This document shows positions 11,601-14,600 of a stretch of DNA of 64,000 bases, piece after piece (position 1 is the first letter of the stretch; each line of letters starts with the position of its first letter). The DNA lies in assembly GCA_002269645.1 (NCBI GenBank), contig NIVC01000525.1, positions 186,001-250,000 on the forward strand, in the 5' to 3' direction. The notes beneath the pieces were generated by a model that was not told the DNA's origin, did no database searches, and was given only the letters and a program-made list of their open reading frames with translations. Both the position numbers and the translations under genes were made by a program. The DNA comes from Macrostomum lignano (Eukaryota).

Positions 11601-14600
11601 TGTTCTTCCGCCGGATCGACTGGGACCGCGTGGCCAGCCGGGACGTCCAGCCGCCGTTCAAGCCGAGAATTGTGAGTTTTTTATTACTAATAGTAAGCTG
11701 TCAACTTCTAGTTAGTAAGGGCTGGCTGTTCAAGCGGGGCTTGTATGATTTTACAACAAACTGCACGCATTCTATGCCAGTGCTCGTCTGTTACTAATTT
11801 CATTATATTCTGTTTTAATAGAATGTTGTCGCTAAATTCAAATGTTGCTTTTTTAAGAAGTCATGAAAAATTTTACATTTTTTAGCAGATTTTTTATTTC
11901 TGCACGAACATTTCTTTTGAGTTACACCGCTGTTAAATTTATTGCGCAATACTTCTCTGTACATCACGAATACGTGTTTGGCTTTGCTTTGATACACTTT
12001 CTTGCATTGTAAGCACGTGCGCTTTCGCTCACATTGTGATGATCCATTGAGGTTTTAATCCCATGCTGATAGACTGAGGATTATCCTATTGTGATAGGCT
12101 GAGGATTAATCCCATTGTGATAGACTAAGGATTAATCCCATTGTGATAGACTGAGGATTAATCCCGTTGTGATAGGCTGAGGATTAATCCCATTGTGATA
12201 GACTGAGGATTAATCCCGTTGTGATAGGCTGAGGATTAATCCCATTGTGATAGACTGAGGATTAATCCCGTTGTGATAGGCTGAGGATTATCCTATTGTG
12301 ATAGGCTGAGGATTAATCCCATTGTGATAGACTGAGGATTAATCCCATTGTGATAGGCTGAGGATTAATCCCATTGTGATAGACTGAGGATTAATCCCAT
12401 TGTGATAGACTGAGGATTAATCCCTCAATCCAAAGCCAAGGCTGAGCCTATATGCAACTATTTCACTGTCATATTTTGCGCACACTTGTTTTGCGTTTCA
12501 CCCAACTGGATTGGCGAGCGCACTGAGTGGAACAGTTGTTGTCACTACTCTCTGCACTGTTTCCTCTTATTTTTCTTGTCACTGTTTATAGATACTACTG
12601 GCTGGCTACTATAATAGGCACTATAGAGCGATAGCCAGTGGTGTACGCCGTGTCGTTGTCGCCGCGTTTGCAGAGAGACGACCGCGATGTTGACAACTTC
12701 GACAAAGTGTTCACGAAGTGCGACGTGAAGCTAACCCCGGTTGACATGGCCGTCATTCACAATCTGTCAACTGTGACCGGCTGCGATCCGTTCTTTGATT
12801 TTGAGCATCGCAACGAGAACTATGCGCCACAGGCGTCGCACCTGTACCAGCTGATGAGCGCTCTTGACGCCTCGGGTTGACACTGGACTCTTGATTCCTT
12901 TATGACTCGAAATGTATATGGCTTAATTATATGTAGTCCTTAATCCCTGCGCTGCTGGAAGTGGGCACGTGTAAGATTTTAGAGAATCACACTGTTAGAC
13001 ACCGGGAAATCACGTGTGTTAGAAGTGGACACCTGTTAGACACCCGGAAATCACGTGTGTTAGAAATGGACCCCTGTTAGACACCTGGAAATCACATGTG
13101 TTAGAAATGGACACCTGTTAGACACCTGGAAATCACGTGTGTTAGAAATGGACCCCTGTTAGACATCTGGAAATCACCTGTGTTAGAATTGGACACCTGT
13201 TAGACACCCGGAAATCACGTGTATTAGAAATGGACACCCATTAGACCCCTAGAAATCACCTGTGTTAGAAGTGGACACCTGTTAGACACCTGGAAATCAC
13301 ATGTGTTAGAAATGGACACCTGTTAGACACCCGGAAATCACGTGTATTAGAAATGGACACCCATTAGACCCCTAGAAATCACCTGTGTTAGAAGTGGACA
13401 CCTGTTAGACACCTGGAAATCACATGTGTTAGAAAGGGACACCTGTTAGATACCTGTAAATCACCTGTGTTAGAAATGGACACCTGTTAGACACCTGGAA
13501 ATCACATGTGTTAGAAAGGGACACCTGTTAGATACCTGTAAATCACCTGTGTTAGAAATGGACACCCGTTAGACCCCTAGAAATCACCTGTGTTAGAAAT
13601 GGACACCTGTTAGATACCTGTAAATCACCTGTGTTAGAAATGGACCCCTGTTAGACACCCGGAAATCACGTGTGTTAGAAATGGACACCTGTCAGACACC
13701 GGGAAATCACCTGTGTTAGAAATGGACCCCTGTTAGACACCCGGAAATCACGTGTGTTAGAAATGGACACCTGTCAGACACCGGGAAATCACCTGTGTTA
13801 GAAATAGGCAGCAAATATTTAAATTTTGAATCACTTTTCTCTAAAAATTTTGCTACATGTCACGCCATTCATTTGTTAAAACTCCAATACCGTCAGCAGT
13901 GCATCCAGCAATTTTACGGAATGGAATGCGATATCCGTGTTTAGCACGCATTGCTGCTGTGCGTATATTTGTCCGCGCGAGTTTTCGTTCCATATTTTGC
14001 ACAATTTATCTTGGTTTGTTCGGATCTCAATACTTATATATTCCTTTAATTCTGCGATGTGCCAGTTTGTTTAATCTATTTTATCGAATATTGTTTTTTT
14101 TGCAATTTTTAATGAAACTCGATTACAGTCATAGTCGATTGGTAGGTAATATGATAATCTTTTATTGCTCATTAAAATCTTGGAAGCAGGAAAATATAGC
14201 CCAATGAAAGAGGCAGGCGGTGAAGTCTGTTTTTAACAGTAAGCAGACAGACCAGACCAGACCAGACCAGACCAGAAAGAACTTAAAAAATTATTTAGTC
14301 GAACGATTTCCTCAAAAATACCATAAAAATCAGTTGGGTCAAGTTCAAGTTAGGAAATTTAAAACCGCAGACATTGCATTAGCCAAGACATCTCAAACTA
14401 TGACTTTAATCGACTGTTAGCAGCACTTTTTTGAATCCTTGATATATTCGAATATATATTCATCATTGTAAACAGCTGTACAGTTAAAGCAATGCAAGCT
14501 AAGCCTCCTGTGTAATATAATGTATACCGTATAGCCAGATACCAAAAACACGCCCCATGCACACCCCTCGCGCCAGAAATCTGCCCGCGACGTCAGCAAC

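Follow-up and report, generated by a model that had tools for sequence, protein, structure and literature searches.

A beta-II-like alternative tail exon with a probable phosphomimetic hydrophobic motif in a Macrostomum lignano gene for conventional protein kinase C

Introduction

The flatworm Macrostomum lignano possesses a conventional protein kinase C (cPKC) gene, BOX15_Mlig019218g1, whose catalytic half, that is, the 3' part of the gene, occupies the plus strand of a 64,000-nucleotide stretch of contig NIVC01000525.1 (assembly GCA_002269645.1, positions 186,001 to 250,000), here called the window. This gene carries two homologous alternative last coding exons, named A and B. Exon B encodes the canonical hydrophobic motif FTGFSY, and in exon A the aligned motif is FFDFEH, with a glutamate in the position of the phosphorylated serine. 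Taken as a whole, and by analogy with other kinases, exon A is probably a beta-II-like tail exon that provides a cPKC with a permanently charged hydrophobic motif; that it is a genuine coding exon kept by selection can be stated with high confidence. What is new here is the combination, within one cPKC gene, of a beta-I/beta-II exon pair and an acidic motif of the kind found in atypical PKCs (aPKCs) and PKNs.

Conventional PKCs need the phosphate of the hydrophobic motif to reach an autoinhibited and stable conformation, and its removal by PHLPP leads to degradation, while aPKCs and PKNs carry a natural Glu or Asp at the same site. This site is central to current work on PKC quality control, involving PHLPP and mTORC2. 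If the reading given above is true, the choice of the last exon could set whether a PKC activated by Ca2+ and diacylglycerol (DAG) faces motif priming and PHLPP-type quality control or escapes them. Within cPKCs an acidic site has so far been studied only as a laboratory mutation, and a natural gene holding both versions would represent a ready-made evolutionary experiment on the purpose of this control, in an animal for which transgenesis has been reported. A wider reading, in which the acidic type-2 exon defines a conserved, unrecognised subclass of cPKC tails and regulated choice of the final exon acts as a splice-encoded switch of PKC lifetime, is put forward as a tentative proposal, somewhat more likely to fail than to hold.

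Gene identity and layout of exons A and B

The gene was identified by a search with the protein assembled from the exons inside the window. The corresponding public NCBI protein model (P0006, M. lignano, 660 amino acids) matches every shared exon of the window, and exon B, exactly, and its domains comprise C1, C1, C2, kinase and Pkinase_C (PF00130, PF00168, PF00069 and PF00433); the two C1 motifs and the Asp-rich loops of C2 (PMDPNGLADPY, WDWDRTSRNDF) can be read directly in its sequence. A single polypeptide thus combines a pair of C1 domains with C2, the kinase domain and the C-tail, as expected for a conventional PKC. The PB1 domain, single atypical C1 and missing C2 of an atypical PKC are not what this protein has, since its domain set is C1-C1-C2 and only the acidic motif is aPKC-like. 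The C1 and C2 exons lie upstream of the window, and the seven shared kinase exons lie inside it (Table 1). A second, nearly identical genomic copy of the gene is present on contig NIVC01000441.1 (locus L004; the window copy is locus L005). The fragmented state of the public models at this cPKC locus is illustrated by P0126 (UniProt, M. lignano, 180 amino acids), which is also a model of this gene; it continues across the intron that separates 10550 from 11531 and extends beyond the stop region of exon B.

The last shared exon ends in phase 0 at position 11671 with the codons CAG CCG CCG TTC AAG CCG AGA ATT, followed by the donor gtgagt, and both tail exons join it in phase 0. Exon A is preceded by the acceptor ccgcgtttgcag, an AG with a pyrimidine-rich tract, begins with AGA at 12674 and terminates with TGA at 12878-12880. 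Exon B follows the acceptor ccctcgcgccag, begins with AAA at 14577 and has its stop at 14727-14729. The layout is that of the vertebrate PRKCB pair, with two homologous stop-containing exons behind one phase-0 donor and the type-2 exon upstream of the type-1 exon; the public protein model contains exon B only.

An earlier note on this DNA, made from the letters alone, had described the position and sequence of exon A and its FFDFEH motif, and had taken A and B as splice alternatives of one DAG-regulated kinase. On direct reading the position, sequence and motif were correct, and the comparisons support A and B as homologous, alternative final coding exons of a single gene with the C1-C1-C2-kinase domain order. 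It had also described an inserted STVTGCDP before the motif and an extension of about 15 residues beyond the end of B. Both features are present, with other lengths: the insertion amounts to 4 residues, not 8, in comparison with B or the type-2 consensus (DQTE), and the extension to 14. Ahead of its hydrophobic motif exon A contains the NFD, F-x3-F-T and turn motifs, whose priming roles are known from AGC kinases. For the segment that follows the motif, a low-confidence model predicts a helix.

Alignment of FFDFEH with the hydrophobic motif

The C-tails taken from 112 cPKCs of many phyla fall into two sharply distinct classes. Type 1, or beta-I-like, follows the pattern ..DVSNFD..FT.E...LTPTDKLF[IM]MNLDQ.EF.GFS[YF].NPE[FY]... 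and mostly ends in Val, and type 2, or beta-II/alpha-like, follows ..AENFD..FT.....TP.D...I.N....F..F[ST][FY].NP..... By using a profile built from 34 type-2 tails, of which 33 have Ser/Thr at the phosphorylated site and one has Asp, exon A was matched over positions 1-51 of 53 with a score of 52.5 bits; F-F-D-F-E-H was placed on F-r-g-F-s-f, with Glu on the phospho-Ser column. A phmmer search against PDB sequences placed FFDFEH on the FEGFEY of the PKC-alpha chains 8U37/8UAK, which carry an engineered Glu at this site, and PKC-iota structures were also among the matches. By both methods, therefore, FFDFEH aligns with the hydrophobic motif and its Glu with the phospho-acceptor, in agreement with what the earlier note had proposed. 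NFD, LTP and FFDFE follow one another in exon A in the order of an AGC C-tail, although the position after Glu is occupied by His where Tyr or Phe is usual. The generic Pfam profile Pkinase_C (PF00433) detects exon A with 25.6 bits against a cut-off of 20.9, over profile positions 3-27 of 44, and exon B with 53.9 bits over positions 2-44. Judged by these comparisons, the resemblance of exon A to AGC and cPKC tails is far above chance.

The statement that no conventional PKC was known with a Glu at this position proved too strong for the sequence databases. A paralog in the same species, P0001, has FEGFEH, and Asp is found in the uncharacterised cPKC-like tails FQDFDW, FAGFDY, FEGFDY and FAEFDF. 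The first of these belongs to P0090, a C2-containing cPKC with a type-2 tail encoded by a transcript-like contig (L010, 1071-2624; JGI 3300008832), and FAGFDY and FEGFDY belong to P0142 and P0151, partial cPKC-like sequences from ENA metagenomes. Among roughly 110 cPKC tails from other species only P0090 bears an acidic residue. At the type-2 tail site such a residue is thus rare, not unique, among the tails examined, and a literature search found no paper on a natural acidic hydrophobic motif in a cPKC.

Conservation and use of exon A

Exon A is intact in both genomic copies, which differ in it by one synonymous change. The third M. lignano cPKC model, P0001 (UniProt A0A1I8GZD6), is more informative: its A-type tail is 65% identical to exon A (expectation value 3e-18 in a search of 1.84 billion representative proteins, which returned two true relatives only, full-length isoforms being hidden behind 50%-identity cluster representatives). 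The shared upstream exon is 72% identical between BOX15_Mlig019218g1 and P0001 (34/47 residues), so that the rate of change in exon A is close to that of a constitutive exon. Since synonymous divergence (dS) among the M. lignano cPKC paralogs is 0.35-0.9, an exon free of constraint would not have remained open and 65% identical. In three long proteins, P0002, P0004 and P0005 (803-3041 amino acids), residues ~12-42 of exon A were matched in 5-12 repeated stretches each; in all likelihood these are repeat proteins with no relation to it.

Outside M. lignano, exon A has its closest relatives on two short assembled contigs, each of which holds only the A-type exon, with a good acceptor of the type ...ctttcacag/CAA. 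One, L003, comes from run DRR639838 and encodes FAEFDF, and the other, L006, from run ERR14224706 and encodes FVEFDF; the latter run is a Tara Pacific coral long-read metagenome (PMC13083261). Both exons have DPF..F[E/D], N..FAPQVS.L and other blocks in common with Macrostomum. Over 77 codons they differ from each other at 37 synonymous and 4 non-synonymous positions, giving a non-synonymous divergence (dN) of 0.023, a dS of ~1.9 and a ratio (omega) of ~0.012, while their flanking introns show about 60-68% identity with indels and are much less conserved than the exon. The acidic character of the site is conserved among these A-type relatives, with Glu in the window and P0001 and Asp in L003 and L006. 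The signature DPFxxF[E/D]x.N..[F/Y]AP[Q/H].S.L may define a subclass common to Macrostomum and the animals behind L003 and L006, one of them from a coral-reef holobiont sample. The intact copies, the tail of the paralog and the low omega of related acidic exons bear out the view that the A-type exon is under constraint and not decaying.

Both contigs have a conserved end, LETTAM before the stop, following ~40 residues that are not conserved, and in both a conserved GTGAG that resembles a splice donor coincides in part with the stop codon (L003 ~896-912, L006 ~708-724). Read from the sequence, this end could be a C-terminal docking peptide, with T-x-M similar to a ligand of PDZ domains, or else a splice donor that is in use. 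The other gene called on L006 has no open frame.

With regard to use, the UniProt gene model of P0001 terminates in the A-type exon, and for BOX15_Mlig019218g1 itself we infer from the sequence that exon A is used.

Origin of the exon pair

In the gastropod Lottia gigantea (L011, KB203566.1) the shared exon at 35089-35229 is followed by a type-2 exon at 36620-36766 and a type-1 exon at 41574-41723. The type-2 exon is intact (…FRNFTFVNPYF…; …KAENFDKYFTRAPVKMTPIDSLVIMNIDDDAFRNFTFVNPYF…) and is missing from the public protein model, which uses type 1. The crinoid gene model P0051 reads through both exons one after the other, type 2 first and type 1 second, and in many mollusc, brachiopod, arthropod and echinoderm genes either tail type is annotated among 'isoform X' variants. 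For vertebrate PRKCB the literature describes an upstream beta-II exon with its own stop, followed by beta-I as the final exon (PMC3537621). The order of shared exon, type 2 and type 1 in Lottia, the crinoid and vertebrates is that of the window, which argues that exon A is the flatworm beta-II-like alternative tail exon and exon B the beta-I-like one, the two forming, by their sequence classes and order, an ancient cPKC exon pair. A private duplication of A and B in M. lignano is ruled out by the same pair and order in other phyla.

A survey of tandem duplicated exon substitutions covers PRKCB, Pkc53E and pkc-2 across phyla and takes the events as convergent (PMC9741552). From the comparisons made here, the beta-I/beta-II exon pair appears to be common to Bilateria, and neither vertebrate-specific nor convergent. 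A literature search on the invertebrate exon pair found nothing specific. In terms of annotation, the beta-II-like exon is absent from the public models of both M. lignano and Lottia.

Proposed mechanism

If 11671 were joined to 12674 in place of exon B, the Ca2+/DAG-regulated kinase would be unchanged except for its C-tail. The earlier note had suggested a splice toggle of this kind, an idea that is reasonable as a proposal. This tail would retain NFD, FxxxFT and a Thr-Pro turn motif, and the turn motif and the FxxxFT site could still be phosphorylated. In FFDFEH both Phe residues may dock in the pocket of the N-lobe, with a permanent carboxylate in place of the phospho-Ser. By analogy with aPKC (FEGFEY), PKN (FxxFDY) and the engineered PKC-alpha S657E and PKC-beta-II S660E, a phosphomimetic role of the Glu is fairly likely. 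High basal activity was seen with S657E in a fusion protein of PKC-alpha, whereas with S657A it was reduced to the wild-type level (PMC8008189).

The A isoform would then mature without phosphorylation of the hydrophobic motif and would be immune to the marking for degradation that follows its dephosphorylation, both in PHLPP-type quality control and in down-regulation. With a motif permanently charged and immune to dephosphorylation, it would thus be a longer-lived cPKC, harder to down-regulate and more persistent after activation. These biochemical consequences of the Glu, namely for activity, stability and PHLPP resistance, we infer from the analogous kinases. The 14-residue extension of the A tail replaces the ...V terminus of most type-1 tails and may be a docking element. 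As for the C-terminus of exon B, a terminal Val occurs in most, not all, beta-I-type tails across phyla, which is suggestive of IVDV being a PDZ ligand, as had been considered earlier.

Comparison with known systems

As in vertebrate PRKCB, a pair of homologous C-terminal exons follows ...PP[FY]KP[KR]x in a single cPKC gene, with the beta-II-like exon upstream (PMC3537621). Exon B is nearly superimposable on the beta-I tail (.NPEF..V), and by its score exon A belongs with the type-2 tails. Unlike the M. lignano pair, however, the vertebrate tails both carry the phospho-Ser (FAGFSY and FEGFSF), whereas exon A has Glu-His, the 4-residue insertion and the 14-residue extension. The same exon class, with an AENFD-like start and at the same position in the gene, is found in the type-2 tails of molluscs, brachiopods, arthropods and echinoderms, but these keep Ser/Thr (FRNFTY, FRDFSF and others), and a few uncharacterised sequences carry Asp (P0090, P0142, P0151).

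The acidic residue in place of the phospho-acceptor is shared with aPKC (iota/zeta, FEGFEY) and PKN/PRK (FxxFDY), and the FEGFEH of the paralog agrees with FEGFEY at 5/6 positions. Unlike aPKC and PKN, the M. lignano kinase has two C1 domains and C2, not PB1 with a single C1 or HR1, its acidic form would be one splice option and not the only form, and it has His for Tyr. The engineered PKC-alpha S657E and PKC-beta-II S660E, and the PKC-alpha chains 8U37/8UAK, correspond in enzyme class and in position, but these are laboratory mutants, and in M. lignano the change occurs naturally, is found again in a paralog and could be chosen by splicing. The exon-substitution survey does not discuss the hydrophobic motif (PMC9741552), and the Drosophila Pkc53E isoforms, as described, differ at the N-terminus only (PMC10318518).

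Alternative explanations

Several observations weigh against reading exon A as a used tail with a working acidic motif. A first group concerns its use and its selection. Neither a word-index search with exon A nor a profile that combined A with the last shared exon brought up an M. lignano protein with the 11671/12674 junction, a silence that carries little weight because P0001 was missed by the index as well. The 1.2 kb 3' of the exon A stop contain no AATAAA, and several follow exon B. The L004 and L005 copies are almost identical in their flanks outside the minisatellite too, and are too alike for a selection test; with introns nearly as similar as exon A, the identity of A between the copies says little. 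The dN/dS ratio was measured on the L003 and L006 exons, not on the M. lignano exon A. Finally, the paralog Mlig032341 (P0009; L001 23162-23546, L002 23074-23458) has only ~97 nucleotides separating its B-type exon from the shared one; the type-2 exon has been lost there and is therefore dispensable in some gene copies. A second group concerns the motif: the generic Pkinase_C profile aligns exon A only as far as the turn motif, the type-2 profile alignment requires a single four-residue insertion directly before FFDFEH, and the position after Glu is His and not Tyr/Phe.

The loss in Mlig032341, the missing AATAAA and the close similarity of the two copies, together with the use of exon B in the public model and the position of exon A between two expanding minisatellites, would fit a relic type-2 exon that is no longer spliced and has remained open only through the short time elapsed, the gene making B alone. 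This explanation is unlikely, because the open reading frame, acceptor and phase are intact and NFD, FxxxFT, LTP and FxxF[E] are all retained. Furthermore, the comparison with P0001, in which the tail is nearly as conserved as the constitutive exon at the dS of the paralogs, implies long-term purifying selection in both lineages, and the gene model of that paralog actually ends in the A-type exon. As for the missing AATAAA, a plausible donor, CGT/GTAAGA, is present at 12971, 91 nucleotides past the exon A stop; taken together, the two lead to the speculation that exon A may be a cassette exon with B serving as 3' untranslated region, as in vertebrate beta-II.

The second group would be explained if exon A were used and FFDFEH did not dock, giving a short-lived, low-activity or scaffold/dominant-negative variant like the AGC splice forms without the motif; an AKT2 form of this kind has been reported (PMC7703976). 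The structure models, too, show no confident docking: by AlphaFold2 the kinase with tail A reached a predicted local distance difference test score (pLDDT) of 67 and the kinase with tail B 65 at the same alignment depth, with tail blocks at 50-67 in both and parts of the core <50. These models do not discriminate on docking, as the B control is equally poor. On the other side, the four acidic tails of the A type (FFDFEH, FEGFEH, FAEFDF and FVEFDF) share F-x-x-F-[E/D] without exception, which would not be expected of an unused motif. Of the two substitutions at this site in the PKC-alpha fusion, Glu but not Ala led to high basal activity (PMC8008189), and a PKC-alpha kinase domain with FEGFEY has been crystallised (8U37/8UAK). 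A non-docking tail is accordingly considered improbable, and a phosphomimetic Glu within a used exon A is preferred.

Least probable is that the choice between A and B serves mainly for localisation through C-terminal docking peptides, a conserved ...V end in B and a helical extension in A, as for beta-I/beta-II with RACK and PDZ partners, the Glu being a tolerated side effect: the hydrophobic-x-V end conserved in most type-1 tails across phyla, the post-motif signature AP[QH].S.L common to the A-type acidic tails and the retention of LETTAM in L003/L006 while the residues before it drift are all in its favour, but localisation is compatible with phospho-control, so that both can hold, and with Ser/Thr near-universal at this site of cPKC tails, the P0090 tail being the sole acidic one among the roughly 110 compared from other species, the fixation of an acidic residue is unlikely to be neutral.

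Other features of the window

The positions of the cPKC exons, of the elements of exon A and of the further features of the window are collected in Table 1. The distance from A to B is 1903 nucleotides in the window copy and 2683 nucleotides in L004, a difference that is likely due to the length of the minisatellite array. The window as a whole is unusually rich in minisatellites.

Table 1. Positions of exons, sequence elements and neighbouring features in the window.
Feature	Position	Strand	Remarks
Kinase exon with Gly-rich loop, 5'-most exon of the gene in the window	2491..2625	+	Exact match to P0006
Kinase exon VLLAERKG…HSCFQTM	3814..3987	+	Match to P0006
Kinase exon	7473..7564	+	Match to P0006
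Kinase exon	8976..9038	+	Match to P0006
Kinase exon with catalytic and activation loops, DFG…TPDYIAPE	9130..9268	+	Match to P0006
Kinase exon ending ICKG	10362..10550	+	Match to P0006
Last shared exon FLTKD…QPPFKPRI, splice partner of A and B	11531..11671	+	Phase 0 end, donor ATT/gtgagt
26-bp minisatellite, 14 copies, intron upstream of exon A	12055..12424	.	
Exon A, alternative final coding exon of type 2 (beta-II/alpha-like), 68 codons and TGA	12674..12880	+	Absent from public protein model
Priming elements of exon A: NFD 12695-12703; FDKVFT (F-x3-F-T) 12698-12715; turn motif L-T-P 12731-12739	12695..12739	+	Sequence, type-2 profile
Hydrophobic motif F-F-D-F-E-H; Glu codon GAG 12803-12805 on phospho-Ser column	12791..12808	+	
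Post-motif segment of exon A, 14 residues longer than that of B	12809..12877	+	Signature N..[FY]AP[QH].S.L in common with other acidic tails
41-bp minisatellite, 20 copies, A-to-B interval	12992..13805	.	
Exon B, type-1 (beta-I-like) last coding exon, canonical FTGFSY, C-terminus IVDV	14577..14729	+	Used in annotated protein
DGK-theta-like catalytic and accessory exons	25362-25754, 28883-29515	-	Pfam labels of annotated loci L004, L005
DGK-theta-like RA-like exons	near 34573-37496	-	Pfam labels of annotated loci L004, L005
DGK-theta-like C1 exons	42989-43685, 45499-45999	-	Pfam labels of annotated loci L004, L005

Downstream of the cPKC gene, a diacylglycerol kinase (DGK) gene of the theta-like type occupies ~24500-46000 on the minus strand, tail-to-tail with it, so that a DAG-consuming enzyme lies beside a DAG-activated kinase. 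Further along on the minus strand, two open stretches, at 59450-59764 and 63114-63371, look by eye like an SLC22-type transporter N-terminus and an exon of a cytidylyltransferase (PCYT2-like).

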